Positions 4,685-47,666 of a DNA stretch of 64,000 bases are shown in pieces. Made by a program: the position numbers and the translations under genes. Position 1 is the first letter of the stretch. The number at the start of each line of letters is the position of its first letter. The stretch is from Macrostomum lignano (Eukaryota): contig NIVC01000709.1 in the NCBI GenBank assembly GCA_002269645.1, positions 1 through 64,000 of the forward strand. The letters run 5' to 3'. The notes under the pieces are model-generated. The model did no database searches. It worked only from the letters and a program-made list of their open reading frames with translations, and was not told where the DNA came from.

Positions 4685-6472
4685 GGCCTGCGATGCCAGA
4701 GCGCCGGCTGCGGCTGCGACCGCTTCAGCCCGGACGGCCGGCACCCGAGACAGTGCGACACCTGCCAGCACGGCTGGATCTACCACGGTGAGGCACCGCG
4801 GCCTGCTAGTGTGTCACTGAGCACTGTCATTGAGAAAGTGTGTCACTGATTGAGAAAGTGTGTCACTGATTGAGAGAAAGTGTGTCACTGATTGAGAAAG
4901 TGTGTCACTGATTGAGAAAGTGTGTCACTGATTGAGAGAAAGTTTGTCACTGATTGAGAGAAAGTTTGTCACTGATTGAGAGAAAGTGTGTCACTGCTTG
5001 AGAAAGTGTGTCACTGCTTGAGAAAGTGTGTCACTGATTGAGAGAAAGTGTGTCACTGATTGAGAGAAAGTGTGTCACTGCTTGAGAAAGTGTGTCACTG
5101 ATTGAGAGAGTGTGTCACTGATTGAGAGAAAGTGTGTCACTGATTGAGAGAAAGTGTGTCACTGCTTGAGAAAGTGTGTCACTGATTGAGAGAGTGTGTC
5201 ACTGATTGAGAGAAAGTGTGTCACTGATTGAGAGAAAGTGTGTCACTGATTGAGAGAAAGTGTGTCACTGATTGAGAGAAAGTGTGTCACTGCTTGAGAA
5301 AGTGTGTCACTGATTGAGAGAGTGTGTCACTGATTGAGAAAGTGTGTCACTGATTGAGAAAATGCGTCACTGACTGAGCCATGACGCGAATTGGTGTCAG
5401 GGACAGGCGCACCCAGTCCAGCATTTAATCGGGCACTGAGCTCAGGTAACTTCAAATCAGGCAGCAATTTGCCTGAAAAAAGAATCGCAAACCGCGGCTC
5501 TCGTCAGAAATTGGAAAAATTAGCGCAAAAAATAGTTCAAGCTAAAGAGCGATGCAAATCGGCCGCGTTCCCGAGGAGACACCAGAATGCGATATGCGAG
5601 ATGACGTTTGAAAACATGGGCAGCAGGCAGGAAAGCATTCCAGAGCTGCTTCTGCTGCTAAGAGGGGCCTCGGAGCCCCAAGCCGAGCTTCGGGATTCCA
5701 AAATTTGACAGCCAAAACCGCGGCAGCTGTCAACTTTAACAAAAGATGCGCCGCGGGCCGCTGGGGGACCCTGAGACGCGGAGAGGACTTCTGTTCCCCC
5801 TCCCAGACCGCAAACAAGTGGTGGCCCCGTGGCCGCCCGTCAGTCCCGTTTGATCCGTCAACTCCCGAAGAACGTGCGGGCAAAGTGAAGAAAAATGTCC
5901 TGCGCAGAGACGAGAAGACGCCGTCAGTGGCCGCATGTGGCGTCCCGGCGGACGAGCCCCGGACCGCAGTTGTTGGGGCGGCCACGGGGCTGGCGCGCTG
6001 CAATTAAAAAACCCAAGACGCGCAGCCGAGGGCACAAATGGCTTGGCCAGCGCCCGCCCCCAGCTGAGATAGTTATCTACCTGACGTGTCAGGGACAAGG
6101 CCCCGGACAGAACATGACACCGCCCTGTCACGGATCCCGGACTCCGGGGGCTTCGCCTCCCCTCTGCCCCATCCCCTGGCCCGTCTGTCTGGCCCAGAAT
6201 GTCACTGAGGGCCGGTTGCTGCTGCAGACCATGCAGTCCCCAACAGCGACCCGCATCATCAGCCCCAGCCTCCGCTTGTCAAAAAGAGGCCAGTCGCCAG
6301 CAACAAGGCTTTGCTTGTCTTCTTCTTCTGCTTCTGCTGCTTCTTTTAGAAGAAGTCAGCGGAGTTTGCTAATGTCGTTAGGGGCAATTAACCGCGGCTC
6401 CTCCCCCGGCAGCACCACCTTGCTGAGACGCTGGAAAATATAATTAGGAGAAGCCAGGCAACCAGCGGATCG

Positions 6473-9500: not shown

Positions 9501-12095
9501 ACAAATAGTCACATGGATAATCACACAAATAGCCACATGGATAATCACACAAATAGCCACATGGATAATCACACAAATAGCCACATGGATAATCACACAA
9601 ATAGCCACATGGATAATCACACAAATTCATCAGTTGGATAATCACACAAATAGTCACATGGATAATCACACAAATAGCCACATGGATAATCACACAAATA
9701 GTCACATGGATAATCACACAAATAGTCACATGGATAATCACACAAATACTCCCATGGATAATCACACAAATAGCCACATGGATAATCACACAAATAGCCA
9801 CATGGATAATCACACAAATTCATCAGTTGGATAATCACACAAATAGTCACATGGATAATCACACAAATAGCCACATGGATAATCACACAAATAGCCACAT
9901 GGATAATCACACAAATAGCCACATGGGTAATCACACAAATAGTCACATGGATAATCACACAAATAGTCACATGGATAATCACACAAATAGCCACATGGAT
10001 AATCACACAAATAGCCACATGGATAATCACACAAATAGCCACATGGGTAATCACACAAATAGTCACATGGATAATCACACAAATAGCCACATGGATAACC
10101 ACACAAATAGTCACATGGATAATCACACAAATAGTCACATGGATAATCACACAATCACTCATCAGCACGGTGGCCACCCAAACCAATCCCGCAGCCATCA
10201 ACTCAGACGTGTCGCCGACGCCGAAGCCGAAGCGCCCAGCAACCGCCGACGTCGCCTCCGCCTCGGCGGCTGGCGCCGACACCGCCAGCTCCGCCGTCGT
10301 GGCTGCAAAGTCGCGCCGCAAGCAGCAGCACCTCGGCTGCTCGCCGACTCCTCGGGAACTCAGCGCCGATGCCGACGAGGACGCCGAAGCTGACGCTCAG
10401 CCGGAGCAGCGATCGGGACATTCAACAGCCGAAGCCGAAGCGGGCACCGGAGACGAGGACTGCGAAGAAAAGTGCATCAACGATCTGGAAGATGCTGAGG
10501 TCGCCGATAACGGCCAGATGAAGCCTCCGGAGGACGCGGGCAGCGACGCCGACGGCCTGGACGAGCGCGACGACCTGCTGGATGGCGAGGACGAAGAGGG
10601 CGAGTACTTGGACGACGGCGAGGAGGTGACGTCAGACATCAACCAGGAGGAGCTGCTGGCACCCGACTGCGGCCTGGAGGTGTCCACCACCCCCACAACT
10701 TTGCTCAGCGGCGGCGGCAGCGGCGGAGTCGCGTCCTCCAGCTCGCTGCTGCAGGGTGGCGGCGGCGTCAGCGGGGGAGTCCGCGGCCGGCCCTGCCTGT
10801 CGCAGAGCAAGCGCCGGGTCCTGTGCACCGTCTGCAACAAAACCTTCTGCGACAAGGGCGCGCTGAAGATCCACTACAGCGCCGTGCACCTGAAGGAGAT
10901 GCACCGCTGCACCATCGCCGGCTGCAGCATGTGGTTCAGCTCGCGCCGCAGCCGCAACCGGCACTCTGCCAACCCCAACCCGCGGCTGCACATGTCACAC
11001 CCAAACCGAAAGCTGCCCGACGGCGCCCGCATCGTTGACGACGGCAGCGGGCGCAGCCTGGCCGGCAAGGCGCCGATGCCCAGCAACATCACCAACCCGC
11101 CGCTGGTGTCGGCGCCGATCCCCTCCCGCCAGCTGGACAGCAACATCGCCAAGGAGATCTTCGAACAGGCCATCCGGTGCGGCAGTCAGCAGCGGCAGCA
11201 GCGCCAGCAGCAGAGCCTGGCTTCCATGTCGGAGGCCTCGGACACCGAGGACGCGGAAGCGGCTCTCGCTGCCAAGCTGGTCTCCGAGGATCCGCCAGCC
11301 AGCGACCTGGACTCGGAGGATGAGCTGCAGAGCCGGGGATCGCAGCAGCACCTGCAGCTTCATCACAGCCTCCTGCAGCAGCAGCCGCCAGCCTGCGGCC
11401 TGGACTCTTCGGCCGAGCCGCAGCACCCATGCGTCATCGAGGGCTGCAACGCCATCTTCCCGTCCAAGCGGAGCCGCGACCGGCACAGCGCCAACCTCAA
11501 CCTGCACCGGAAGCTGCTGTCCACCAGCGGCGGCGGCGGCGGCGGCTCCTTCCAGCAGCTGCAGGGCAAGCCGCAGGCGCAGCACCAGCAGCGGCCTTTC
11601 CAGCAGCCTTCAGCGGCGGAGGCGGCATTCAGCGAGTCAGCAACCGCGCAGCTGCCGCCTCCTCCGCCGGCCTTCCTGTCCGGCTTGTTCCCCTTCGGCG
11701 GCACTGCGGCGGGGCTGCGGACGGCCGCGGCTGGAGAGCGCGGCGGAGTCGGTGGCGGCCTGACGTCGACAACGATGGCGCACCCGGGCGCGCACCCGCC
11801 GCCGCCGCCGCCTCCGCCGCCGCCTCCACCGTTTTTCCCAGCGGCCGCGGCGGCTGCCGCAGCTGCCGCATATTTTCAGCGCCAGCAGCAGCAGCGCCAG
11901 CATCCGGCGTCTGCGGCTGCTGCGGCAGCTGCCGCTGTGTCTGGCGGACAGCCGCTGCTGCCGCCGCCGAGCTTCGGCTTCCCCCTGCCGTCGATGGCGG
12001 CAGCGGCGGCCGCGGCGGCGGCAGCTGCTGGGGGATTCGGCAGCGGTGTTGGCGGCGGGATGCCCGGATCGTCGGAGACCCTCCTGTCACCGTGA
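4685..12095 (+). CDS. BNC2/disco: Basonuclin/disconnected (disco) family C2H2 zinc-finger protein. Exons 4685-4787, 7747-8000, 8868-9174, 10195-12095; start exon not resolved (possibly ATG 4427)
   Basis: Spliced product reads ...[36 protein letters not shown]...[66 protein letters not shown]...[10 protein letters not shown], the basonuclin N-terminal domain. Exon 4 has the disco-type finger pair [52 protein letters not shown] and a further finger [28 protein letters not shown]. Junctions are GT-AG with matching phases (1,0,1); AATAAA near 12175. Confidence 0.93.
4808..5372. repeat. 20-22-bp minisatellite (GTGTCACTGATTGAGAGAAA) just inside the bnc intron-1 donor
   Basis: About 26 visible tandem copies starting ~20 bp after the GT at 4788. 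Confidence 0.95.
6476..6553. repeat. (AG)n microsatellite
   Basis: Pure agagag run. Confidence 0.98.
7452..7717. repeat. 20-bp minisatellite (GTCACTGAGCTAGGCTGTTG) just before the bnc intron-1 acceptor
   Basis: About 13 tandem copies ending ~30 bp before the AG at 7745-7746. Confidence 0.95.
7985..8390 (+). repeat. Tandem repeat made of the bnc exon-2 end plus its splice donor (GGGGTACATCCTGCAG|GTGAGGCGG)
   Basis: True donor at 8001; ten further CAG|GTGAGG copies at ~8026, 8053, 8078, 8106, 8131, 8159, 8184, 8307, 8336, 8362. Confidence 0.93.
8502..8862. repeat. 16-bp minisatellite (ACCTGAACTCCAATGC) abutting the bnc intron-2 acceptor
   Basis: About 22 perfect copies ending at ...ccttcag|GAC (8867/8868). 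Confidence 0.96.
9192..10153. repeat. 24-bp minisatellite (ATAGCCACATGGATAATCACACAA) filling bnc intron 3
   Basis: About 40 copies, with a recurring variant unit TTCATCAGTTGG at ~9481, 9627, 9819; source of the [16 protein letters not shown] ORFs. Confidence 0.96.
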
Positions 12096-12914
12096 GTGAG
12101 CAGTTTATCATTGTGCCCACTTGCACCTGCAAGCCAATCACGAATGTATATAAGTTGATGAAGAGGCTCATTCAATAAACTCAGCATTTCTCTCCCCAAC
12201 AACCCCTTCAAATCCCCGGCAGATTTCGGCTTCCAAAGCTGCTGCCAGTCACCAACGGGCCCAAGGAGCGCGGCATGGAGACCTGACCGAATGCCTCATA
12301 ATGGAGCTTGGAACAACCGTTGTCTGACTGACTGTCAAATACTAAGCATTGCTTCGCTTTGCAAATGTAACAGATTTAATTTGTACACGCGGGCAGCCAC
12401 TTTTTCTCAAGCATGGCTATTATATTCTGTAGCTCTAGGATGACCCAATCTTGCTACTGATATCAGTATTTAATGGATTTGTAGGCAGTGTTTCTATGAT
12501 GTACAGCTTATCTGTGCGGCTCTCGGCATTGCACATGTATTTCGCACTGCATCTGCATCTAAATTATGGCTAATTATGATCAAGTTGGTCGTTAAAAGAC
12601 TTGTCAAACACGGAACGCGCTACTTACGAGCGTATTGTCAGTAGTTAGAAGCAACGGCTTTGTTTTACGCTGATTATTGTCCCTACGTCGGTTGTTTGAT
12701 GTTTTGCTTTCTGCTTTATAGAACAGGCGTGCTGCTAAATGCATATGAAATAAACGAAAAATACTGTAGAGGCTCATCCAGGTTATTTGCGCAACTTCTC
12801 TGCTGATTTATGTGCGAGTTCGCTTGCTTGCTAATAAAATTACACTTGTGAAACAAACACTACATGTGTGTTAATCGTTTGAGTCGTGCTGAGTAGAGAG
12901 ATATGCAACAAAAA

Positions 12915-13772
12915 ACTCTGACAGGGTCTCTAGTAGATGGACTCACAGGGACTCTAGATGGCTTCACAGGGTCTGTAGATGGACTGAAAGGGTCTCTAGA
13001 TGAGCTGACAGGGTCTCTAGATGGACTGACAGGGTCTCTAGATGGACTGACAGGGTCTCTAGATGGGCTGACGGAGTCTCTAGATGAGCTGACAGGGTCT
13101 CTAGATGGACTGACAGGGTCTCTAGATGGACTGACAGGGTCTCTAGATGGACTGACAGGGTCTCTAGATGGACTGACAGGGTCTCTAGATGGACTGACAG
13201 GGTCTCTAGATGGACTGACAGGGTCTCTAGATGGACTGACAGGGTCTCTAGATGGACTGACAGGGTCTCTAGATGGACTGACAGGGTCTCTAGATGGACT
13301 GACAGGGTCTCTAGATGGACTGACAGGGTCTCTAGATGGACTGACAGGGTCTCTAGATGGACTGACAGGGTCTCTAGATGGACTGACAGGGTCTCTAGAT
13401 GGACTGACAGGGTCTCTAGATGGACTGACAGGGTCTCTAGATGGACTGACAGGGTCTCTAGATGGACTGACAGGGTCTCTAGATGGACTGACAGGGTCTC
13501 TAGATGGACTGACAGGGTCTCTAGATGGACTGACAGGGTCTCTAGATGGACTGACAGGGTCTCTAGATGGACTGACAGGGTCTCTAGATGGACTGACAGG
13601 GTCTCTAGATGGACTGACAGGGTCTCTAGATGGACTGACAGGGTCTCTAGATGGACTGACAGGGTCTCTAGATGGACTGACAGGGTCTCTAGATGGACTG
13701 ACAGGGTCTCTAGATGGACTGACAGGGTCTCTAGATGGACTGACAGGGTCTCTAGATGGACTGATGGGGTCT
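12915..13772. repeat. 21-bp minisatellite (GACAGGGTCTCTAGATGGACT)
   Basis: About 40 near-perfect copies; explains ORFs 12903-13796 and 12964-13779. Confidence 0.97.
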
Positions 13773-14501
13773 CTGCCAACTGACGAAACTCAATAGGTAG
13801 GACCTGCTTAATTTCTCCAACGCGACAAACCTGTGTTTGTAGAAGGCGCGCAGCAAATTACCGGCATCGTTGCTATGGGGAAGTGATGCATTCTTCAGGG
13901 GGGGGGGCAGGAAGCTCACACAGTTTGCTAGCGCTAAGGGAGCCCCCGAACCACCTGCGATTTTTGGTCGTCACGCCCCATACTGGCTACTTTCAGTAGC
14001 TGAAATTTCCCAGCCACTCGTCCTCTCTCATTCTATAAATAACTCATGACGACACTATAGACGTGGAGATCTTTGAGTTATTAGCGATTAATTAATATAA
14101 TTAGTTTGATTAAATATTTGTGATCGTTTGTTTATTTCAGAATAAAAAAAAATATATTTCAAAAAAAAAAATCAAAAAATATTTATAAGTACACTCAACA
14201 ACATTGAAAAGTCGCCACCCTTTGTGCCACAAACGAACTTCGATCTCATCGGATCTCCCCTAAAAGTCGCACAACTCGCACTCTACACTGCGGGGCATGC
14301 ATTGCGTAACCACCATGCTGAGCAATGGGCTTTGACACAAAAACAATGATAACATTGTTTGTTTAGTTTTTATAACCCTGACAGCAAAATTTGAATTACA
14401 AAATGGTTAATTTAGAAACATTCCTTAGGTCTTTTCAGGTCCTTTCAATGTTGCTGAAATACATACGGCTGCAAAGGCTGGAGAACGGCTTGGATAGCAG
14501 A

Positions 14502-15032
14502 ACAAGATTAAACAAGATTGAACAAGATTAAACAAGATAAAACAAGAATAAACAAGAATAAACAAGATTAAACAAGATTAAACAAGATTAAACAAGATTA
14601 AACAATATTAAACAATATTAAACAAGATAAAACAAGATTAAACAAGATTAAACAAGAATAAACAAGATTAAACAAGATTAAACAAGATTAAACAAGATTA
14701 AACAAGATTGAACAAGATTAAACAAGATAAAACAAGACTGAACAAGATTAAACAAGATTAAACAAGATTAAACAAGATTGAACAAGATAAAACAAGATAA
14801 AACAAGACTGAACAAGAATAAACAAGATTGAACAAGATTGAACAAGATTAAACAAGAATAAACAAGATTAAACAAGATTAAACAAGAATAAACAAGATTA
14901 AACAAGATTAAACAAGATTAAACAAGATTGAACAAGATTAAACAAGATAAAACAAGACTGAACAAGAATAAACAAGATTGAACAAGACTGAACAAGACTA
15001 AACAAGAATATACAAGATTAAACAAGATAAAC
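14502..15032. repeat. 10-bp minisatellite (AACAAGATTA)
   Basis: About 50 tandem copies with minor variants. Confidence 0.96.
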
Positions 15033-15206
15033 AAAAAAGACTCATTCGGAATGGTAATGTGGATAATTGGTAGCGATATGATTATAACTCATATATTAGA
15101 ATAGTTTTTCCACTCTCTCAACAGATGACAATCAGGAGAGTCCATGCATACCGTCAGTGTCATAGAGTCTATATAGAGTCAGTCAGTGTCAGCTTCAGTG
15201 TCAGTG

Positions 15207-15827: not shown

Positions 15828-16488
15828 TCAGCCGGCAGATTTCCTGCTAGCAGCTTTATAGTGCTTATAAGAGAGAAACTCCAAGCAAAAACATAGGTAA
15901 TATCCAAATAAGTCACGGATCCGGATCACCCGAAGGGCTTTCTCACACTGTTTTAAAATTCTTTCCTTGTTGCTCTCGAACGGGTCTTGTCCATCGCGAG
16001 CTGCAGCGATGATCTCTGCAGACTTTTTGGCCTCCTGCAGTAGCTTCGTCCGATTTTCCCAGCCAGGACGTTTCTGGGTGTCTTCCATCTCAATAAGATG
16101 GTCCACGTACTCCCTCACGCTTAACGGGTACTGGCGCAGAGCCATCTGCTCAAGTGACTGCAGGCATTTGTGAATTGTCACAATGTTGTAGGACAGCTCA
16201 TCGAAAGTTGCGTCTATGTCTGCTTTGATTTTTAATAGAAGACCTTCAGTTTTGCAAAATCGTTTTGCAAAATGTTTTGCAATTTTTATTTCATGCATTT
16301 TTACGATTGGTACTACATGCATTACTACTCCATACTCTTTAGCAATTTCCTCCACAGTCACGGTTTTCGCGACTTCGTATTCTTCAAAGCGATATTCGCT
16401 GTTGCGGTGCTCAGACAAAACACAATTTTTCGGACAAACAATGCAGCAGCCGCTAGAGTCCATAACAGAGCACAAGGCGCTGTCCTTC
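15828..16488 (-). CDS. C-terminal part (Cys-rich + coiled-coil) of the stonustoxin-like MACPF-FN3-GTPase gene, separated from the rest by a transposon
   Basis: QKDSALCSVMDSSGCCIVCPKNC...H...LEQMALRQYPLSVREYVDHLIEME...RPGWENR continues the CMTCRRTCHDKCS Cys-rich segment at ~20720 in frame once 16491-20715 and one TG are removed. Confidence 0.85.
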
Positions 16489-16564
16489 TGCCCGAGAAAA
16501 AAAAACAAACCAAACTTGCTAAGTACTTGGTAAGTCAACAATGCAACCTCGTGGCAAGTACCGC

Positions 16565-17262
16565 CTAAGTACTTTCTAAGTTTTCCAAGTACACTCAATA
16601 AGTACTTTCCAAGTATCAAGTATGCAATGTTTTCTCCAGTCACTTCTCAAGTACTTTCCAAGTATGCAATGTTTTCTCTAGTCACTTCTCAAGTACTTTC
16701 CAAGTTTGCAATGTTTTCTCCAGTCACTTCTTAAGTACTTTCCAAGTATGCAATGTTTTCTCCAGTCACTTCTCAAGTACTTTCCAAGTATGTAATGTTT
16801 TCTCTAGTCACTTCTCAAGTACTTTCCAAGTATGCAATGTTTTCTCTAGTCACTTCTCAAGTACTTTCCAAGTTTGCAATGTTTTCTCCAGTCACTTCTT
16901 AAGTACTTTCCAAGTATGCAATGTTTTCTCCAGTCACTTCTCAAGTACTTTCCAAGTATGTAATGTTTTCTCCAGTCACTTCTCAAGTACTTTCCAAGTA
17001 TGCAATGTTTTCTCCAGTCACTTCTCAAGTACTTTCCAAGTATGCAATGTTTTCTCCAATCACTTCTCAAGTACTTTCCAAGTATGCAATGTTTTCTCCA
17101 GTCACTTCTCAAGTACTTTCCAAGTATGCAATGTTTTCTCCAGTCACTTCTCTAGTACTTTCCAAGTATGCAATGTTTTCTCAAGTCACTTCTCAAGTAC
17201 TTTCCAAGTATGCAATGTTTTCTTAAATCACTTTTCAAGTACCTTCCAGGTATGCAATGTTC
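16565..17262. repeat. 42-bp left subterminal tandem array of the transposon
   Basis: AAGTACTTTCCAAGTATGCAATGTTTTCTCCAGTCACTTCTC, ~16 copies. Confidence 0.95.
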
Positions 17263-19414
17263 ACAAGAGCTATAAATACTTATCACATTTCAAAGTGATT
17301 TAGGTGACTTATTTACGAGAAAGTATATGGTTCCAAGTGTGAACCTATTAAATATATAATTTATCTATAGAGCACTTGGCAAAATGTTGATACTCATACT
17401 ATGGACTTGCAAAAGTTACAAAGAACAAAAAATAATTCCATCATACAGAATTTCACTTGTTAAAGAAAAAATTCAACAAGCAATAGGGAGCTTCAAAATA
17501 ATTGTAAAGTGTACTGTTATATTGTATTCAAAGTATTGATACACATAAAAGTTGCAACTTAACAAATTATTCAAATGATCACAGGCAGAAAAAATGCAAG
17601 ACAAAGAAAAAGCAGCATAAAAAATGGACAATTATATAGCTAACAAATCTTCATTGTTTTCAGCAGGTTTTTTAAATATAGATGATGACATTTGTAGATG
17701 GTAGCTAAAATGGAAATTTAAGTGAATATGAATAATTATATTTCACAAAAAATTAAACCATGTAAATTTTACCCAGGTAATAGTTCTTAATCTAAAGAAA
17801 TGCTAAGTAAATGCACTTTATAATATAATTACTATTTTGAGACTAATAGCAGTCTTTTTTTGAATGTAATAAATAAGTCTTTAAATATTTTTATAGAGAT
17901 ATTATAAAATATAGAAAGTATTGAAATCTAAATATATTCCAAACAAAAATATTACTTTGCTTTTGAATAAAAATTTAATTTAGGCCTTGTCCTTAATAGA
18001 CCAATAATATAACATAGTTTATAAATATACTTAAATATTTTTTTATTATAAATTGCTTAATTTTCTGATCTTAAAATCTAAATCATCAAATATACTAAAA
18101 ATAAAAATATTCTATAAACTAAAAATAAAATTTTAAGTCTAAATACTTCTAGGCTTATAATTAAAAACTAACTAGGCTTATATTATATTTCTAATAAGCT
18201 AAAGACAATTTATTAGAATGATTATAATTATAATTGGGCCTAATCAACAAATATCCTAAGACTTAATAAAACAATATTATTACTACCAATCTATTATCAA
18301 TAATAAAAGTAAAAAATTTGCAATCAAAATTATTAACATAGCCTGGATAATTCTAGTCCAGCTATCTAAAAGTAAAAAAACAAAGTATTTTTACTCTGAA
18401 GCATTTCTTGCACTTTTTACAATGACATTAAATCTGAAACTGAAGATTAAAAACAGAAGCTATAAGGCAAAACTATAAACAAGGTCAAGGTTAGATAAGG
18501 AAGGCCAGATGATTTTTCCTATATATATACTAACCATTATGCAGATCAAGACAATAATTCAGATTAAGTCACAACTCACAAAAGTCAGTTTTAAAATTTT
18601 ATCTATATTTATATTCTGAGTCAGTATAAGTAATATACTAAGCCCATATGACTATAATATTAGCCTTCTAAAAAACTTCTAGATCTAGTTAAAGAAGCCA
18701 AGAAGGCAGGCCTATGCCTATAGGGCATAGTGGGTAGGCTGGCCTACTGGGCCATATAAAATGTCAATTACAATAACTATAGTCAGCCAATTGTTGAGCG
18801 ACAAGGTATATCAACTACTATATGAAATAAAATCGGCAACAAATAATTGCTAAAAGGCCTATCTAACTAAAGCCTAAGTTTGAAAAGAAAGATAAAAGGA
18901 CAATTTTACACAAACCTATGCGAAAGCGAAAATTAGAATTTTCGTTTCAAATTTTGACAGTTTAAACAAATTAGATAATAATCATTTGCCCCAAACAATA
19001 TAAGATGTAATATATATTTCATTTGTTAATGAAACAAACACTCAAGAATCAGTAAATACTGATATTTTAGCAAAACTTCCTAAAATTTTTGTCATAATAG
19101 ATTAGTAAAAGAATTAAAGTCTTGCAATGTGCAATTGTGTAAATGTATTTATAGAGTCTTTTCATGTAAATTATGCAATCCAAAAGAATGTTTGCCTTTT
19201 ACGGAACACTAGCTTTGATGATGCAGCTAGCCAAGCTCTTCCCAAAGAAAAATACAGACACCTATAGCTTCGGGATGTATTGCTGTAGCTGTATTCAGCT
19301 GTATTCAGGAATATAAAAATTCCGAGGAATAGCCAAATAATCATTTTTTGTGAGCGGGAGCGATGTCAGCTAAATAAAAGCTGTTATCCTGCTGGTAAAA
19401 AATGTGTATGTACG

Positions 19415-20585
19415 GATTTTGCAAACTTGGAAAGTCAACCAAGTAGGCTCTACTTTGGATACTTTCCAAGTACTTGGATGTAGACATCGGAAGTGTACTT
19501 TGCAAACTTGGAAAGTCGAACCAAGTAGGCTCTACTTTGGATACTTTCTAAGTATTTGGATGTAGACATCGGAAGTGTACTTTGCAAACTTGGAAAGTCG
19601 AACCAAGTAGGCTCTACTTTGGATACTTTCCAAGTACTTGGATGTAGACATCGGAAGTGTACTTTGCAAACTTGGAAAGTCGAACCAAGTAGGCTCTACT
19701 TTGGATACTTTCTAAGTACTTGGATGTAGACATCGGAAGTGTACTTTGCAAACTTGGAAAGTCGAACCAAGTAGGCTCTACTTTGGATACTTTCTAAGTA
19801 CTTGGATGTAGACATCGGAAGTGTACTTTGCAAACTTGGAAAGTCGAACCAAGTAGGCTCTACTTTGGATACTTTCTAAGTACTTGGATGTAGACATCGG
19901 AAGTGTACTTTGCAAACTTGGAAAGTCGAACCAAGTAGGCTCTACTTTGGATACTTTCTAAGTACTTGGATGTAGACATCGGAAGTGTACTTTGCAAACT
20001 TGGAAAGTCGAACCAAGTAGGCTCTACTTTGGATACTTTCTAAGTACTTGGATGTAGACATCGGAAGTGTACTTTGCAAACTTGGAAAGTCGAACCAAGT
20101 AGGCTCTACTTTGGATACTTTCTAAGTACTTGGATGTAGACATCGGAAGTGTACTTTGCAAACTTGGAAAGTCGAACCAAGTAGGCTCTACTTTGGATAC
20201 TTTCTAAGTACTTGGATGTAGACATCGGAAGTGTACTTTGCAAACTTGGAAAGTCGAACCAAGTAGGCTCTACTTTGAATACTTTCTAAGTACTTGGATG
20301 TAGACATCGGAAGTGTACTTTGCAAACTTGTAAAGTCGAACCAAGTAGGCTCTACTTTGGATACTTTCTAAGTACTTAGATATAGACATCGGAAGTGTAC
20401 TTTGCAAACTTGTAAAGTCGAACCAAGTAGGCTCTACTTTGGATACTTTCTAAGTACTTGGATGTAGACATCGGAAGTGTACTTTGCAAACTTGGAAAGT
20501 CGAACCAAGTAGGCTCTACTTTGGATACTTTCTAAGTACTTGGATGTAGACATCGGAAGTGTACTTTGCAAACTTGGAAAGTCGA
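19415..20585. repeat. 82-bp right subterminal tandem array of the transposon
   Basis: TGCAAAC recurs at 19501, 19583, 19665...; ~14 copies; shares AAGTACTT and CCAAGT motifs with the left array. Confidence 0.95.
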
Positions 20586-20715
20586 TTGAAGTTGGGTAAA
20601 AACATTGCATACTTTTTAAGTACATGACAATGATACTTTGCAAACTTGGTAAGTCAACAATGTCATCCAAGTACATGGTTGACTTGGAAAGTTTAGCATG
20701 TTTTTTTTTCCCGGG

Positions 20716-23690
20716 TGACTGCATTTGTCATGACAAGTTCTTCGACATGTCATGCAGTTCGTGGCAAACTGATCATGGGGCAGCTTAACCTCTCGAACTT
20801 CCAAGGACCTAACTTCGCATTTCCTACTAAAATCCGAGCTAAAAAAGAACTTGCCACAAGAGCCAACTAGTTTAACATACTCCGCTAGATTGGTCAGCTT
20901 TTGTAGGTCTGACTGGACACTTAACTTCAGTTTCTCCGCGCAGACTTCCATCGATCTGCGACTTTTCAGAGTCTCTCGGGTGCTGAGCAATGAGACCCCA
21001 TCGTGGCTGCTTTCGAGCTTCTCAAAGAGTTGTTGATAATTGTAATTACATTTTTTCCATTGTGGGGCTTTCAAGTGAAACTGCGAGCTCTTAGACTCTC
21101 CACGGCTCGCTTCGGGGCCCTCAGACTCTGTGTTGTTGGCGTACAACGCAGCATTGTTGAAGCTTAGATACGTTTTGTAAGGCACTTTGTCTTCATCCAA
21201 GGCATCCAGAGCCTCCGGTTCTTCGCTATCGGCGAATGTAAAAAGAGGATAAATGATGGGCTCCACGTCCTTTCCAAAAAGAGATAGTACTTGGTCAAAG
21301 ATGTACCTCTGCGTTGCGTTCAGTCGGTTTTCGGAAGCTCTCACAACGAAACCGATTCCATGCAAAACCCCCGTCACTCCAGGAATATATTGCCCGTCTT
21401 CTCCAAGCACTTTCGCTATTTTCATAATATTAATTTTATCCTGAGCCGGACCCCGAGTGTCCCCGAATCCCGGCGTGTCAATGATGGTGAGAGGACAGTC
21501 CATTGCACTTCTGTGACTGTCCTCCTTGCCTCCTGTGTGCACAGGAAACAGTGTGTACACGGACACGCCAGCGGTCTGCGAATGAGCCTGGCTAGCAGCT
21601 GCACTTTTGTGGCGACTTTCGAGCTGTCGAACTAGTTTCAGTCTAAAATTGTCATCGAACTGTACCCTGTAAAAGGCATTTGCAATGCCATTGATTAGGG
21701 TGCTCTTGCCTGCTCCTGTCTCTCCAATTAGAAGCAGGAACTTCGGTGGCCCTCCGCCTGCATTCCGGTTGCCGACTTCGAAAGAGTTGGGACAGATGCA
21801 ACTCTGAGAGCACTTGCATTCTGGTGATGGAATCTGCCGAACCCTTAACTGAAAAATATTCCCAGCAAAGGTTTCTCTTTTCTGAGCTGGAGTCGGATTG
21901 TCTTCGCAAAAGTTCTGCAGAACAAATTCTGAGCAGTTCAACGCAGGCTCAGTGGTAAAACTGATCTGCTCGCTGGGCTCAGATTCTCCGAGTTCTGTCA
22001 CGGCAGTGACATACGCTTTGTGAGGAGTTCCCGCATACAGAGAGCTTACAGTAATGCTGTTGGTCTCAGTTGATTCTCTGTGATATGGTAGTAAGTCAGC
22101 CTCCCGTTGTCTAAGAACATAGACTACATATCCGTTCGATGCATTTGGTTCGGCTTTCCAAGAAAACTTGGCTGTGTTTTCATCCACTTCTGAGCACTGC
22201 AGCTCAGTTGGTGGTTTTGGCAGTTCCGTTTCAGTCCATGCAAAGTCTTTGTAACACTTTATTTGCAACTTGACAGTTTGTTGGTCATGTGGAGAGCCTT
22301 CAATAACTGCTACCGCAGCCGATCCACGATTTTGTTGAAGAAATCTCACTGCCCTGTCCAAATCTCTCCGGTAGCTGCGGTAATCTTCCGATTCGATCCA
22401 AGTTTTTCCTACTTCCTCCGCACACGTTGGCTGCGGCAAGTACTGTGGAAAATGTGATCTTGGTGCCTGGACCTCAAACAAAAGTTTGTAATCGGATCTG
22501 TTTGCGACGAATAACTCATCCTTTTCTCTTTCATTCAGAACGCGAGCACCGTTGTCTGAGAGAACACGGGCGGAATGCTGCAGCGCCATGCACTCTCTTT
22601 CTCTGTTTCTCAACCACATCAATAGCTGTTGAGGTGAGGCTCCGCATTCGTCTTTCTGACGCGAAATGAGCTCGGAAATCTCTCTACTTACATCTCCTGT
22701 TTGACGCGCCCTGGGCAAAATTGACATCAGCTGGTCTCTAAAGCGGGTCCGGTATGCCTGCACCCGATCTCTAAACGTGGCCAACACTTCGCACTGCATT
22801 CGCCACGGCGTGTCTTCAAGCTCCTTAATCTTGTCATCGGCAGCGTTTATTATGTCGTCTAGCAGCTGGCAGTAATTTCCGGCTTCGTTCAAGCATTCTT
22901 CACTGATGCCTCTCATCAGTTTCTGATCTTTTCCTCCGATTTTGCTGAGAGGCGTGAGATACACCTGGACCGGAGAGCCGGCGTTTTCGCTCTTGAAGCT
23001 CTGCACACAACCGAAGGCCTCCCTGAGTGTGAGCGGAGGCGGTTCCAGCTTGAAGTCGCCATAGTAACGGCATCGAATACTCTCTGTCTCCGTGGCGTCA
23101 TTCTTTGAGTGCTCTGCCTGCAGTTGACCAGAAACTTCGAAAAGGCTCTTCAGTTTAGACACCTGGCCTCTGAATGAGCCTGAAATCCCAGTCTTGCTTT
23201 CACTTTCTTGCTTCTCTCGCTCAAACACAAGAAACGCCCTGCCGCCGTACTGGATCCCGGTCACAACGTGCGTGGCTGATTCGTCATCGAGAAATTGCGG
23301 GTATTCAACTTCAGGACCCAGGTGCAGCTCCTTGAACTCAGTCAAGGTTTTGTATGCAAATACGAGACTCTCTGAGTTGACTCGAGTCAGTTTCTCAGTG
23401 AGGTACTTTCCTGAGCCTTCCACTTCGGCGGAACCGCACAGAAAGCTGAGTTTTAAATCGGCGCTCATCTCTAGCTTTTTTGCTCTGTCGGAAAAGCTGG
23501 ACTGTGATTCAATGCTGATTGCCTGACTCACATTGGGCCTGGTGACGGTCATTTCGTCGGTTGTCTTCCGAGACCAGAGCTTGGGACCCGTCAGGTATTT
23601 GCCTGTTTGAGCATCGTACAGGGTTCCGAGCGATGCAGGTCCTCCTATGTACGGGATTGACAGACTTTGATTCGCAACGTCTGTCGTCAT
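20716..23690 (-). CDS. Stonustoxin/neoverrucotoxin-like MACPF/CDC protein fused to FN3 and a septin/AIG1-type P-loop GTPase (N-terminal ~990 aa; ~1211 aa when rejoined); transposon-interrupted, possibly a null allele
   Basis: ATG at 23690: MTTDVANQSLSIPYIGGPASLGTLYDAQTGKYLTGPKLW resembles the stonustoxin N-terminus (LGxLYDA...LW); ATHVVTGIQYGGRAFLVFE core; FN3 (PPTELQCSEV...FSW...GYVV...VSSLYAGTPHKAYVTAV...GESEPS); G1 GETGAGKS, G3 DTPGFG, G4-like TFAD. No intron in the coding region; a 5' UTR acceptor (ttattgcag) lies at ~23718. Confidence 0.9.
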
Positions 23691-24664
23691 TTCTCGTGAT
23701 GCGAGCGCCGCTCTCTGCAATAATAATATTATGACGAGTTTTTGCTCCAAAGTACCATGCAATCTTATATCAAGGAGCACTAAAAGTTACCGTTGAATCA
23801 GGACGCAACACTTGCAAATATCATTCAAACAATTTCGCAATATGTTGTTTGATCTGTGGCGAGCAGTCCAGGTCCTATAGCTAAGAGAGGGACAGCGAGA
23901 GACGAGAAGGGAGCATTTTGAAGGTAGAGATCAGCTAATCCGCAGATTAACTAACCCGCTGCCACCAGCCCGTGCGTCCTGGCTCACCAAACCGGGACTT
24001 TCGAAATCGGGCTTCCGACTAGAGGGGGCTTTGCACTTACTAGTGTCTTTTTGCTGTCAATCTCGACGTCATAGCCGATGATAAGGGAGGGGACTCTGCT
24101 GGGACTTGATCGCATTGGCCATGCAGGTACAGAGGGGACTTGTGCAGGGGATTCTTGCGGTGGCGAGTCCATTGCAGGGGTGGCTACATGTACTAATACA
24201 TTGCTAAATACGAGGGATTGTACTTTTGACCCTCAACGCGCCAACCAGCCTCTCGTAGCGCTGATGATAGGCTAACTCGAACTTCAGAGAACGCATGATT
24301 CATTAACCCGAGCCGCTTGGCGAATCTAGAGTGCACAGAGTACATGTACATCTCTAGCGTATGATTCTGCACTATTGGCAATATTGCTAACTGATTTGAT
24401 AGACTGATCGACTGAGAACTACAGTTAGTTATTCCAAGGCTACTTCAAGTCCTTATAATAAAAAAATTCGACTTTTCATTGCCTACTTTGGGACAAGACT
24501 GAATATTGCTTAATTGCGCCTTAATTTCATCCTGGCTTAGTCACCCTCCAGAGACCAGCTTCGCCCTTCCAGGCAAGCGGCTATTTTATTGCCTTTACTG
24601 TGTACTTTATGAATTTTATCCAGCACAATGGCACGCATCTACATTGGCTGATGTGTAGCCCCTA

Positions 24665-25228
24665 AATGAGTTGACGAGGTCTCTAGATGAGCTGAGGAGG
24701 TTTCTAGATGAGTTGACGAGGTCTCTAGATGAGCTGACGAGGTTTCTAAATGAGTTTACGAGGTCTCAAGATGAGTTGACGGGGTCTCTAGATGATTTGA
24801 CGGGTCTCTAGATGAGTTGACGAGGTCTCTAGATGAGTTGACGGGGTCTCAAGATGAGTTGACGGGGTCTCTAGATGATTTGACGGGTCTCTAGATGAGT
24901 TGACGAGGTCTCTAGATGAGTTGACAGGTCTCTAGATGAGTTGACGAGGTCTCTAGATGAGTTGGAGTCTCTAGATGAGTTGACGGGGTCTCTAGATGAG
25001 TTGACGGGTCTCTAGATGAGTTGACGGGGTCTCTAGATGACTTGACGAGGTCTCTAGATGAGTTGGCGGTTCTCTAGATGAGTTGACGGGGTCTCTAGAT
25101 GAGTTGACGAGGTCTCTAGATGAGTTGATGGGGTTTCTAGATGAGTTGACGGGGTGTCTAGATGAGCTGACGGGTCTCTAGATGAGTTGACGAGGTCTCT
25201 AGATGAGTTGACGAGGTCTCTAGATGAG
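24665..25228. repeat. 21-bp minisatellite (GACGAGGTCTCTAGATGAGTT), related to the array at 12915-13772
   Basis: About 27 copies sharing TGAC and GGTCTCTAGATG with the 12.9-kb array, same orientation. Confidence 0.93.
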
Positions 25229-27265
25229 ATTAGTTCCATTAGCAGATAGGATTTGGATATTACATTAAATAGGTAAATTAAAGATGTACTTTGCAGAAAT
25301 GTTAACTTACAGAGCAGCTGACTTTTTACTGACGACACGTGCCTGTATGACTGACTTCTTTGACGGCAAAAAATAGCCAAATTTTCCAAATATCAGAACT
25401 TAGTGCTTAGTGCCACGTCCTTCCTATTCTAGCTACGCCCTGCCTTATACAAAGCCTTTAAATAAAACAGTGCATTGTCTCTGGGGGTGGTTGAGGTTCC
25501 TGGTTCTATTATTAGAATTGACGTATGTAGTTCCTAGTTTCCATGACTCATTACTCACTCATAAGGAACAAACGGCCGGGTCTGTAAACTTTAGTTCCCT
25601 GTTTTTGTTTTCAATTCATTTAAGCAGCCTTATAATTTCAGTAACCTTATACTCGTAGTAGCTGTCTGATTGAAAACAAAATGCGAAATCAGTGCCTGAT
25701 TAACATTCGGTACTTTAAAATTTCTACTTGATATGCAAGAACTTTTTGCATGTACTGGGTGTGTTTCTTCACGCACTGGTTTGAATTTATGATCAGGCCC
25801 ACGTCGCGTACAATAGGAGCCTGCTGAGACAATTGGAGGAAGATTTCTGTTGTAAATTTGTCATAGAAGTTGATTTATTAGTAGGTTTAAGTAAGCGGCA
25901 AGTTCGACGTATGATTTCGGAAGATGGCGAACCAAGTAGACCGCAATTTTTACAGATTTCTTTGGAATTTTTACAGATAAATATTTAAATAATGAGATTA
26001 TGGATGAAGTGCATTTTTCCCAAAAGCTCCGTCATGAAAACTGCCCTGAGCGAAATTTGAGGGCTGTGTGAGCTTTCTGTGTGAACTTGTGTGTTACTCA
26101 CGCGATATGATTCATGCCATAAATTTCTGATATGTGCGCTTAAAGGCTCACACAAGGCTCACATTGAGATTTTTTGTACAATAATTATGGACAAAATTAC
26201 TTTGTCCATAATTATTGTGGTCAAATTTTCTTACGAATCAATCATTATATCAATCATTAGAACTTGTAAGGCACACTCGTATAAAATTGGTGACACAATA
26301 AGACTAACAAAGTTGACAATTTTGCTCCATTCTTGGGGTTAGCCGTTATACACGAATTAGATAAGTATTTTATGAATTTATTTTGTGAACCACGACACAT
26401 AAATGTAACATCCTGGTACATTGAATATTAATTTAATACATCAGATACACTCTTGAACTCTGTGTGCAAATTTATACTTATTAGTTAATTGGGCGGTGAA
26501 TTAAGGTGCAAGAGTACAAAACTTCCAACATCGGACAACTCCTAAACCAATTTATAGCTAAGCTTTACATACTACTTATTAATACCAGTAGTGTGAGTTA
26601 GGATCAACAAAAGATGATGAAAAACCTGTGTGACACGGGCTTGACAAAACAGGTGCAGTAGGAAAGTTAACACCTCAGTTGCTAAAGAAACAGCCAACAA
26701 CAAAGTGCATCTGTACCATACTTCTGCAACATCAAAATACAACTAATTAAAAATTTGGGACTACCTGGTTGCCTTAGCAACGATGATTCACCTTGGATAC
26801 AGCATACTGTGCTGGCACATCCACAGCAATCACACAGCAATCCCATGCCTGATGCCAGAGACCGGCCTCACTTTATAGGACAATAATATAATTAATACAC
26901 AATAATACAGCATAATAGATAGAAGCAGAGATGCGACACAAGCGCAGGAAAGAAGCAACCGACATAGTAAAAAAGCAAATTGCACAACAACGATACAGAA
27001 GGGGATGGAGGGTTCGAGATCTTGATGGAAACAGTGATTCACTGATAAAATCTCTTAGCCGAGCGTGTGGAACAGACAAAACGTTTGAAAATGGAAAGCC
27101 AGAGAAAGGATTGCTTTGTAAGCAAAGTCCGCAGCTCTGCGAATATTTAATAAGATCAGTTCATTATAAGTTTTTTGCGTAGCCATGATTTATTTAGAAA
27201 TTCCTGTAGCCATGCCAAGCTGAAATCACAGGGCGGGTCGAAGATTCGAGTGAGTTCAAGGGCGA

Positions 27266-28440
27266 TTCTGAATGATTATTGGGGCCATTCTGAATGATTA
27301 TTGGGGCCATTCTGTATGATTATTGGGGCCATTCTGAATGATTATTGGGGCCATTCTGAATGATTATTGGGGCCATTCTGAATGATTATTGGGGCCATTC
27401 TGAATGATTATTGGGGCCATTCTGAATGATTATTGGGGCCATTCTGAATGATTATTGGGGCCATTCTGAATGATTATTGGGGCCATTCTGAATGATTATT
27501 GGGGCCATTCTGAATGATTATTGATGCCATTCTGAATGATTATTGGGGCCATTCTGAATGATTATTGGGGCCATTCTGAATGATTATTGGGGCCATTCTG
27601 AATGATTATTGGGGCCATTCTGAATGATTATTGGGGCCATTCTGAATGATTATTGGGGCCATTCTGAATGATTATTGATGCCATTCTGAATGATTATTGA
27701 TGCCATTCTGAATGATTATTGGGGCCCTTTCTGAATGATTATTGGTGCCATTCTGAATGATTATTGATGCAATTCTGAATGATTATTGGGGCCATTCTGA
27801 ATGATTATTGGGGCGATTCTGAATGATTATTGGGGCCATTCTGAATGATTATTGGGGCCATTCTGAATGATTATTGGGGCCATTCTGAATGATTATTGGG
27901 GCCATTCTGAATGATTATTGGGGCCATTCTGAATGATTATTGGGGCCATTCTGAATGATTATTGGGGCCATTCTGAATGATTATTGGGGCCATTCTGAAT
28001 GATTATTGGGGCCATTCTGAATGATTATTGGGGCCATTCTGAATGATTATTGGGGCCATTCTGAATGATTATTGGGGCGATTCTGAATGATTATTGGGGC
28101 GATTCTGAATGATTATTGGGGCGATTCTGAATGATTATTAGAGCGATTCTAAATGGTTATTAGGGCGATTCTGAATGATTATTAGAGCGATTCTAAATGG
28201 TTATTAGGGCGATTCTGAATGATTATTTAGGGCGATTCTAAATGGTTATTAGGGCGATTCTGAATGATTATTAGGGTGATTCTGAATGATTATTTAGGGC
28301 GATTCTGAATGATTATTTAGGCGATTCTGAATGATTATAGGGGCCATTCTGAATGATTATTAGGGCGATTCTGAATGGTTATTGGGGCGATTCTGACTGA
28401 TTTTTAGGGCGATTCTGAATGATTATTTAGGCGATTCTAA
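27266..28440. repeat. 22-bp minisatellite (GGGGCCATTCTGAATGATTATT)
   Basis: About 53 copies, drifting to AGGGCGATTC variants at the 3' end; ends ~85 bp from the stop of the minus-strand gene. Confidence 0.96.
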
Positions 28441-28524
28441 ATCTAAAGTGAACCAACAGATAGATTTCTGTAAATAGAATCGGAGCCACAAGGAGCGGTG
28501 ATTCAAATCGAACTCACAGTCCAG

Positions 28525-42709: not shown

Positions 42710-47666
<4,957 letters not shown>

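Follow-up and report, generated by a model that had tools for sequence, protein, structure and literature searches.

A stonustoxin-like MACPF domain fused to a septin/GIMAP-clade GTPase module in Macrostomum lignano, in a gene copy split by a transposon-like insertion

INTRODUCTION

Can a perforin-like pore-former and a GTPase that might switch it be found in one polypeptide? This question is raised by a gene in a 64,000-nucleotide stretch of DNA from Macrostomum lignano (GenBank assembly GCA_002269645.1, contig NIVC01000709.1, positions 1 to 64,000 of the forward strand), which in its full length is called the window below. The gene lies on the minus strand in two pieces, 23690-20716 and 16490-15828. 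Its product starts with a stonustoxin (SNTX)-type MACPF/CDC domain, continues with predicted FAT-like helices and a putative thioredoxin-like region, and leads through a fibronectin type III (FN3) domain into a GTPase of the septin/GIMAP clade. Behind the GTPase come a long predicted stalk of helices, a Cys/His cluster and a tail that is again helical. Such a domain content is far beyond chance, and we consider the anatomy of the gene, its family membership and the insertion that separates its two pieces to be near certain. What the protein does is a matter of graded probabilities, which are weighed in the Discussion.

RESULTS

Anatomy of the gene

The first coding piece lies within a minus-strand open reading frame (ORF) of 1,054 codons (23780-20616) that contains the start ATG at 23690, and a second minus-strand ORF (16643-15828) provides the C-terminus and the stop codon at 15828. 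When joined, they give a protein that is 99% identical to the NCBI entry 'hypothetical protein BOX15_Mlig032689g1' (1,211 amino acids [aa]), referred to as P0001. The initial annotation of this DNA, made from the letters without database searches, had reconstructed a protein of about 1211 aa; its coordinates were right and the intact copy P0001 has this length, but in the window the full length is reached only after skipping 4,225 bp. The features of the gene are as follows:

20716..23690, minus strand: coding piece 1, aa 1-991, from the ATG at 23690 to the insertion, with all domains from MACPF to the stalk and the initial part of the Cys/His cluster
22911..23663, minus strand: SNTX-type MACPF/CDC domain, aa 10-260 (PF24674, PDB 4wvm match, AlphaFold2/Foldseek, invariant residues)
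22554..22901, minus strand: helical FAT-like stonustoxin domain, aa 264-379 (PF21109; four long helices in the model)
22221..22532, minus strand: alpha/beta region where SNTX has its thioredoxin-like domain, aa 387-490 (secondary structure of the model; homologues match PF18078)
21951..22214, minus strand: fibronectin type III domain, aa 493-580 (PF00041, E=5e-10; Foldseek FN3 matches)
21771..21935, minus strand: Cys-rich linker CSEF...CEDN...CKCSQSCICP, aa 586-640 (homologue alignment)
21111..21758, minus strand: septin/GIMAP-clade GTPase domain, aa 645-860 (weak Pfam AIG1/Septin, PDB profile match, Foldseek, invariant residues)
21702-21725, minus strand: GTPase G1 motif GETGAGKS, aa 656-663
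21468-21479, minus strand: GTPase G3 motif DTPG, aa 738-741
21228-21239, minus strand: GTPase G4-like motif TFAD, aa 818-821
20721..20756, minus strand: first half of the Cys/His cluster, C979, C982, C986, H987 and C990 (conserved columns)
16491..20715, no strand assigned: insertion of 4,225 bp with terminal inverted repeats, a non-autonomous element as read from its ends and the empty site
15828..16490, minus strand: coding piece 2, 220 aa and the stop codon (second ORF, alignment)
16407-16472, minus strand: second half of the Cys/His cluster (C..CC..C...C....H), in coding piece 2
15834-16292, minus strand: C-terminal helical region, in coding piece 2

Among the aligned homologues, the Cys-rich linker at aa 586-640 is common to the Macrostomum paralogues only. 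The two coding pieces have a GC content of 49% and 45%, with a GC content at third codon positions (GC3) of about 0.5, compared to 60-70% GC and a GC3 of 0.84 for neighbouring genes, and this lower GC content had been noticed in the initial annotation, as had the absence of a signal peptide. The protein is a soluble multidomain chain in which no signal-peptide-like or transmembrane stretch was found, the highest 19-residue Kyte-Doolittle mean being 1.2.

The ends of the gene showed two further features. A pyrimidine-rich stretch ending in ttattattgcag at 23715-23720 on the minus strand, 25 nt upstream of the ATG at 23690, resembles a 3' splice acceptor, and could belong to an intron in the 5' untranslated region or be a spliced-leader trans-splice site. 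At the other end, the protein terminates in an aromatic, hydrophobic patch, LFGYYLCFCLEFLSY (the C-terminal ~30 aa, 15831-15920, minus strand), and many homologues have a Trp-rich end. In length the patch falls short of a transmembrane helix, but it could be a membrane-associating tail as found in some GIMAPs.

The N-terminal half resembles stonustoxin

Pfam assigned MACPF_SNTX (PF24674) to aa 12-188 with 33.4 bits (cut-off 27), Stonustoxin_helical (PF21109) to aa 302-367 with 27.3 bits, which barely reaches the cut-off of 27, and fn3 (PF00041) to aa 493-578 with 39.8 bits (cut-off 25). A phmmer search against all PDB sequences returned stonustoxin beta (4wvm_B, E=1e-37, aa 10-380) and stonustoxin alpha (E=2.8e-32), aligned over approximately aa 10-400. 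The stonustoxin-type N-terminus and the FN3 domain recognised in the initial annotation are thus borne out by searches against profiles and structures. No Pfam match to the thioredoxin-like family PF18078 was obtained for the window protein at aa 387-490, where homologues match this family strongly, and no SPRY/PRY domain was matched in the window protein, the FN3 domain and the GTPase module standing at that position. The MACPF signature (S/T)-H-x7-G-G is present as ATHVVTGIQYGG at aa 139-150 (T140-H141-x7-G149-G150). Across 21 homologues T140, H141 and G149 did not vary, and across 60 homologues this held for T140 and G149.

An AlphaFold2 model of aa 1-600, built on a 60-sequence alignment, had a mean predicted local distance difference test score (pLDDT) of 85.9 and a predicted template modelling score (pTM) of 0.81. 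With this model, Foldseek retrieved stonustoxin beta (4wvm_B, E=1.3e-25, template modelling [TM] score 0.59) and stonustoxin alpha (E=4e-24, TM score 0.55) over ~680 aligned columns, as well as the MACPF domain of Toxoplasma TgPLP1 (E=2e-6) and many FN3 domains with target-normalised TM scores of 0.8-0.9, so that the proposed MACPF/CDC fold was recovered by modelling. The modelled MACPF domain consists of a central sheet with the helical clusters of the two transmembrane hairpin segments, TMH1 (aa ~62-100) and TMH2 (aa ~160-205), the clusters themselves lying at aa 66-98 and aa 166-204 of the model. Behind it come four long helices (aa 264-379), a mixed alpha/beta stretch (aa 387-490) and an FN3 domain of seven strands. 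When hydrophobicity was averaged over the 60 sequences, its period-2 alternation reached the maximum of all 600 residues at aa 73-86 within TMH1 (z=3.5), and two more peaks were found in TMH2 (z about 2.1). Judged by this model, the N-terminal half is a structurally intact MACPF/CDC unit of the stonustoxin branch. Because the TMH segments are modelled as helices, yet carry the alternation of beta-hairpins, as the hairpins of MACPF/CDC proteins do, the model suggests that pore-forming competence has been retained, which we take as support and not as proof.

The C-terminal GTPase and Cys/His module

In the window protein, Pfam gave sub-threshold matches at aa ~646-834 to AIG1 (PF04548, 21.1 bits, cut-off 27), Septin (PF00735, 19.1 bits, cut-off 26.2) and MMR_HSR1. 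The Septin and AIG1 cut-offs are passed by the M. lignano paralogue P0003 and by fish homologues, with scores of, for example, 41.5 for AIG1 and 38.1 for Septin. The match to the septin model covers only approximately its first 75-125 of 280 positions, its C-terminal part being unmatched. In a comparison of an alignment profile with the PDB, septins ranked at the top (E=1e-7) over the G1-to-G3 region.

The alignments showed invariant GTPase residues at G656, G661, K662, T706 in switch-I, D738, T739, P740, T818 and D821. At the position that determines guanine specificity, the family reads TFAD instead of NKxD/AKAD, hence the Asp is kept and the Lys is not. The consensus of the module comprises the GTPase with GATGAGKSTLING, SQT, DTPGFGDT and TFAD, then a long helix, the Cys/His pattern CxxCxxxCHxxC...C...CxxCxxxC...H, and a conserved helical tail, RLxEIALKPNPL...YIDLLIxSEK. 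This plan is common to the stand-alone proteins, animal and bacterial, and to the fused ones, in which the module stands behind FN3. In an alignment of 104 sequences, the Gly and Lys of the P-loop, the switch-I Thr, DTPG, the Thr and Asp of TFAD, seven Cys and one His were invariant, and two further Cys and one His were conserved in more than 90%. The G1, G3 and TFAD motifs and the Cys/His cluster had all been read from the window in the initial annotation, and their key residues turned out to be invariant or nearly so across the family, so that the nucleotide-binding motifs have been conserved over hundreds of millions of years.

The C-terminal module was modelled from aa 586-1211 of the public uninterrupted P0001, the two window pieces being analysed apart, and the model had a mean pLDDT of 81.5. 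The best Foldseek matches of its G domain were GIMAP7 (3zjc, E=1.8e-6, target-normalised TM score [TMt] 0.53), Toc34 (TMt 0.52-0.60) and septins 2, 3 and 9. Over its full length the model also matched bacterial dynamin-like proteins, LeoA, IniA, dynamin, Drp1 and mitofusin (probability 0.98-1.0), at low TM scores of about 0.2. Together with the septin profile match, the G-domain matches place the GTPase in the septin/GIMAP/Toc clade, in line with its first description as septin/AIG1-like. In the model, the G domain is followed by a 46-residue helix, a beta-rich region, a 50-residue helix and more helices, and the beta-rich region between the two long helices contains every conserved Cys and His (pLDDT about 87-96). 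This order of secondary-structure elements suggests a stalk that carries the Cys/His domain distally, in the place of the PH domain of dynamin, and the conserved residues indicate that this domain probably binds metal. Scans of the GTPase module with NCBIfam and PADLOC gave generic P-loop matches only and no model for the module.

The fusion occurs from Cnidaria to Xenopus

A HMMER search with piece 1 against 1.84 billion representative proteins gave 3,661 matches at E<=1e-3, of which 693 at E<=1e-30, and many of them align in a single stretch over aa ~8-990. The SNTX-type MACPF domain and this GTPase occur together in at least 111 proteins (111 of the 276 retrieved), and the named fusion proteins are found in the databases only as 'uncharacterized' or 'Fibronectin type-III domain-containing', which agrees with the earlier expectation that similar architectures would exist as uncharacterised entries. 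Fusion proteins were found in the following animals:

Soft coral: Dendronephthya gigantea
Crustaceans (shrimp, crayfish): Palaemon carinicauda, Cherax quadricarinatus
Rays: Narcine bancroftii, Hemitrygon akajei
Ray-finned fishes (including reedfish, bowfin and carp): Erpetoichthys calabaricus, Amia ocellicauda, Cyprinus carpio, Gouania willdenowi, Pholidichthys leucotaenia
Amphibian: Xenopus tropicalis

Several of the fusion homologues were assigned MACPF_SNTX, Stonustoxin_helical, Thioredoxin_11, fn3 and AIG1/Septin by Pfam. Other combinations occur as well, including a sponge-like protein (P0026) with Thioredoxin_11, FN3 and the GTPase, and a protein of probably fungal source with MACPF_SNTX, DUF7656 and a related GTPase. 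When aa 590-991 were searched alone, 974 proteins matched at E<=1e-3, some of them bacterial, and most were stand-alone proteins of 500-700 aa, from the sponge Amphimedon, the sea anemone Actinia, an ostracod, crabs and a shrimp.

The paralogues of M. lignano form three or more divergent groups. P0003 carries one intron of 2.4 kb exactly at the boundary between FN3 and GTPase (aa 588; 11764-14155 of locus L009), which fits a joining of the two halves as separate units, and P0002 has one intron, after aa 22. Because the fusion is found from Cnidaria to Xenopus, its architecture is old and widespread and no invention of Macrostomum. Both halves come from known superfamilies and fused proteins are already present in the databases. 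The protein can be described as an SNTX-like MACPF protein in which the GTPase module stands in place of PRYSPRY. In the literature, which was searched by way of the fusion, the locus tags and 'paraseptin' relatives, no paper on the fusion or on the stand-alone GTPase family was found.

The initial annotation had seen in the lower GC content and the supposed lack of introns a hint of retroposition, horizontal origin or rapid family turnover. For the gene as a whole neither retroposition nor a horizontal origin is needed, since the architecture extends from Cnidaria to Amphibia and the Macrostomum paralogues bear introns, and a horizontal origin of the whole gene was rejected on account of the pan-metazoan distribution.

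The window copy is split by a transposon-like insertion

The P0001 gene is a single uninterrupted ORF of 3,636 bp (1,211 codons) on a separate contig, NIVC01000573.1 (L001). In blastn alignments, L001 8476-12975 matched window 25228-20716 with 97.2% identity and L001 12974-14964 matched window 16490-14500 with 97.4% identity. The two loci are therefore collinear, save for 4,225 bp of the window (16491-20715) that are absent from L001, and the flanks of the uninterrupted copy are 97% identical to the window. The junctions overlap by 2 bases, a duplicated CA on the minus strand at 20717-20716 and 16490-16489, and the segment ends in 34-nt terminal inverted repeats (TIRs) at 16491-16524 and 20682-20715 that are 82% complementary. 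The 17-nt terminal motif occurs at two sites only in the window, namely both ends of the insertion, where 0.04 are expected by chance. The insertion has a GC content of 32.5% and contains internal tandem arrays of 42 bp x15 and 82 bp x14. No transposase ORF was found in it, the longest ORFs being derived from the repeats (<=105 aa), and a search of the remaining window sequence and of three further M. lignano loci (~69 kb in all) gave no second copy of the element. As read from this anatomy, the segment is a non-autonomous TIR DNA transposon.

An intron at this position was rejected, given the collinear copy that lacks the segment, the inverted-repeat ends and the paralogues without an intron there, and a reading of the junction sequences gave no canonical GT..AG pair that would restore the uninterrupted junction. 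The description of the coding region as intronless thus has to be replaced by that of a gene copy split by a transposon-like insertion. The insertion separates the fifth from the sixth conserved ligand of the Cys/His cluster (C990 and C998 in P0001 numbering). The coding sequences of the two copies differ at 24 of 3,633 nt (99.3% identity), 20 of 2,973 in piece 1 and 4 of 660 in piece 2, and both pieces of the interrupted copy are still open reading frames. These few differences and the open frames argue for a recent insertion. The frame of piece 1 continues into the transposon sequence for 33 more codons, up to a stop at 20616, so that the product would be without half of the Cys/His domain and without the conserved tail. 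As the transposon interrupts the Cys/His domain, the window copy is probably inactive or truncated, unless unusual splicing rescues it. An annotation of this disrupted copy as an intact gene with a single exon would be wrong.

The window copy and the public copy differ at 13 amino acids. Only one of these differences lies in the first 687 residues, and the other twelve lie in the GTPase and stalk (aa 688-981, 20718-21629). The ratio of nonsynonymous to synonymous substitution rates (dN/dS) in the GTPase domain was 0.89 from 12 substitutions, too few changes for a selection test, and with only 24 differences between the two copies their dN/dS says nothing on relaxed constraint after the insertion.

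The region upstream of the gene showed a second structural difference between the two copies. Upstream of the uninterrupted copy (L001 42-8981), a unit of ~1.4 kb containing a 21-bp minisatellite is present in ~6 tandem copies, and roughly one copy of the same unit is present in the window at 24662-26259.

The GTPase module has bacterial relatives

Stand-alone versions of the module were found in Cyanobacteriota, including Microcoleus anatoxicus, and in Caldilineaceae (Chloroflexi), where they are annotated merely as 'GTPase'. Over about 360-550 aa, they share 50-56% identity with the modules of anemone, sponge and fused animal proteins. The window GTPase was the most diverged of those compared, with 33-38% identity to members from outside Macrostomum. 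The cyanobacterial contig also carries genes for TPR/WD40, NB-ARC with HTH_VMAP-M9, DUF4351 and transglutaminase proteins, and the Caldilineaceae contig carries FGE-sulfatase and CHAT genes. Neighbours of these kinds are typical for bacterial genomes and speak against eukaryotic contamination, and they bring to mind the conflict systems centred on NTPases that Kaur et al. described for multicellular bacteria (PMC7159879). Of the parts of the gene, only the GTPase module shows a likeness between bacteria and animals (50-56% identity) that is high enough to suggest a horizontal transfer sometime in the history of the family.

In two independent cyanobacterial assemblies, a conserved ORF of 532 aa ends 34 nt before the stand-alone GTPase (L006 4369-5967 and L007 800-2398). 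This ORF, which has no Pfam match, may be an operon partner of the cyanobacterial GTPase. It was also considered as a hidden MACPF partner, and this was rejected, as neither Pfam nor hhalign (probability 0.3%) detected any similarity to the MACPF half.

Other features of the window

Long and very regular minisatellites, with periods of 10-26 bp and up to 54 copies, are spread over the window, and one of them is 100% identical over 22.5 copies. Many give spurious long ORFs on both strands. They are listed here with the other genes that were recognised:

4829-5378, 7470-7718, 7984-8216, 8502-8861, 9191-10154, 12918-13774, 14501-15034, 24662-25228, 27260-28442, and more beyond 42 kb: minisatellites
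10170-12095, plus strand: ORF of 641 aa, 70% GC, GC3 0.84, with motifs like those of C2H2 zinc fingers and long runs of Ala, Gln and Pro
44771-45331 and 45728-46564, plus strand: DEAD-box helicase exons (DEAD, Helicase_C), with minisatellite-filled introns between and around them
52712-54112, plus strand: ORF with a match to the ALK/LTK glycine-rich domain, broken by short tandem repeats that translate as CRLQHT repeats

The 641-aa ORF had no Pfam match at E<=1e-3, and its composition is strikingly unlike that of the MACPF-GTPase gene (GC3 0.84 versus about 0.5).

DISCUSSION

Proposed mechanism and its alternatives

When nucleotide-bound, GTPases of the GIMAP, septin, Toc and dynamin-like kinds form dimers or polymers on membranes, and in MACPF/CDC proteins oligomerisation on the membrane precedes the unfurling of the helical clusters into a beta-barrel. 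Since the protein described here fuses a GTPase and a MACPF domain, both of kinds that assemble on membranes, assembly of the module may gate or template the pore. On balance we lean, by a little, towards a nucleotide-switched pore-former in which the C-terminal GTPase module controls the assembly of the MACPF domains, likely for defence. The GTPase module would act as a nucleotide-dependent dimerisation or oligomerisation switch, like GIMAP, septin, Toc and dynamin-like proteins, and would gather and orient the MACPF domains on the target membrane, after which the two MACPF helical clusters would unfurl to beta-hairpins and perforate it. The Cys/His domain at the tip of the predicted stalk would be the best candidate for the recognition of a membrane or a ligand. 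The likely role in defence, either as innate immunity or in another inter-organism conflict, is suggested by the bacterial gene neighbourhoods, the expansion of paralogues and reports on stonustoxin-like fish proteins. Such proteins of non-venomous fish have been considered defence proteins (bioRxiv 10.1101/2024.12.17.628919), and an FN3-bearing SNTX-like protein increased 3.5-fold in carp skin mucus after infection with Ichthyophthirius (PMC5910588).

Several points weigh against this mechanism. The literature searches turned up neither experiments nor expression data on members of the fusion family, and several MACPF proteins are non-lytic, for example the astrotactins (PMC4892435 for astrotactin-2). 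The Septin and AIG1 scores of the window protein lie under the gathering cut-offs, and the full-length matches to dynamin-like structures (5oxf, 4aur, 6j73 and 5a3f) have TM scores of only ~0.2 and root-mean-square deviations above 27 A. Moreover, the metal binding and the tip position assigned to the Cys/His domain are drawn solely from conservation and secondary-structure order.

The same domains could also serve other ends. It is conceivable, but unlikely, that the target is the cell itself, and that the protein acts as a self-directed executioner, resembling an NLR or resistosome, in which the GTPase and C-terminus sense cytosolic danger and, driven by nucleotide-dependent oligomerisation, the MACPF domain perforates the own cell in a pyroptosis-like suicide. 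The layout with an N-terminal effector, a central NTPase and a C-terminal variable region would suit this, as would the lack of a signal peptide, the probably fungal MACPF_SNTX-DUF7656-GTPase protein, and the NB-ARC/HTH_VMAP, CHAT (caspase-like) and FGE-sulfatase neighbours of the bacterial modules, which are typical of abortive-infection-type systems (PMC7159879). However, the GTPase is not a STAND (NACHT or NB-ARC) ATPase, repeat-type sensor domains are lacking in the protein, and the data do not tell a self target from a non-self target. A quite improbable alternative would move the pore outside the cell, with the protein being a defensive or predatory cytolysin that, like stonefish toxin, leaves the cell without a signal peptide, for instance in mucus or through epidermal or rhabdite glands, to act against predators, prey or ectoparasites, the GTPase serving storage, assembly or autoinhibition. 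Stonustoxin, to which it is homologous, has no signal peptide either. M. lignano has several paralogues, and the FN3-containing SNTX-like protein induced by a ciliate parasite in carp is a component of skin mucus (PMC5910588). Yet a conserved GTPase with all catalytic motifs is hard to explain outside cells, because GTP is scarce there, and the family is present in many non-venomous animals, frogs and carp included.

That the MACPF domain makes no pores at all, and acts as an astrotactin/BRINP-like scaffold for protein-protein or membrane binding on a septin-like cytoskeletal or trafficking GTPase, seems very improbable to us. Several metazoan MACPF proteins, such as astrotactin-2, are indeed without pore formation, and septin-clade GTPases are often scaffold builders, but the MACPF signature and the amphipathic pattern of the TMH segments are kept across the family, and the nearest relative is a proven cytolysin. 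The chance that fusion or insertion is merely an error of gene model or assembly is next to negligible. The window is rich in tandem repeats that are able to mislead assemblers, but MACPF to GTPase is a single uninterrupted ORF of 991 codons in the window, the full ORF of 1,211 codons is continuous on an independent contig, more than 100 proteins from many assemblies show the same architecture, and the insertion ends in exact TIRs with a 2-bp duplication.

The preferred reading, a GTPase-switched pore-former, can be extended to the tentative and rather doubtful claim that the family is an undescribed class of cytosolic innate-immune effectors, ranging from corals to amphibians, in which a septin/GIMAP-like GTPase directly gates a perforin-like pore in one polypeptide. 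If true, this class would be a one-chain counterpart of systems that combine a GTPase coat with a lytic effector, or of resistosomes. Control of the pore by GTP would be a new regulation of MACPF pores and would add a new effector class to the septin/GIMAP clade, whose molecular mechanisms are still unclear (PMC3804274). The conserved fusion also gives a testable handle on the question of what the stonustoxin-like perforin relatives do in non-venomous animals. Finally, the 50-56% identity between animal modules and those of cyanobacteria and Chloroflexi makes this module a candidate for an immune-type gene exchange between multicellular bacteria and animals.

Relation to known systems

The closest known system is stonustoxin/neoverrucotoxin (PDB 4WVM), to which the N-terminal ~490 aa are homologous, with a common fold of the MACPF domain and probable counterparts of the FAT-like helices and the thioredoxin-like region. 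The protein has kept the MACPF signature and the helical TMH clusters, and like stonustoxin it has no signal peptide. It is not known to serve as a venom or to form alpha/beta heterodimers. However, the identity is only ~27%, and the C-terminal PRYSPRY of stonustoxin is here replaced by FN3 and a 620-aa module of GTPase, stalk and Cys/His domain. In the C-terminal half, the G1 and the DTPGFGD-type G3 motifs are septin-like and relate the protein to GIMAP/AIG1, Toc34 and septins, the 'paraseptin' clade of TRAFAC GTPases, but septins have AKAD at G4 where the window family has TFAD, and these GTPases have no counterpart to the long stalk with the Cys/His domain. With dynamin-like proteins (LeoA, IniA, dynamin and mitofusin) it would share the plan of a GTPase, a long antiparallel helical stalk and a distal domain, whereas the GTPase is not of the dynamin type and the predicted tip is a Cys/His beta domain instead of a paddle or PH domain.

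Perforin-2/MPEG1, an ancient metazoan MACPF protein of intracellular defence (PMC7593815), has a signal peptide, a membrane anchor and a low-pH trigger, lacks a GTPase, and belongs to a different MACPF branch. The logic that we propose is like that of plant CC-NLR resistosomes and of GBP/IRG coats that recruit lytic effectors, in that an NTPase oligomer brings a perforating element to the membrane. This is an analogy only, with no homology to any of them, and what sets the protein described here apart is that the candidate switch and the perforin-like effector are combined in one polypeptide.

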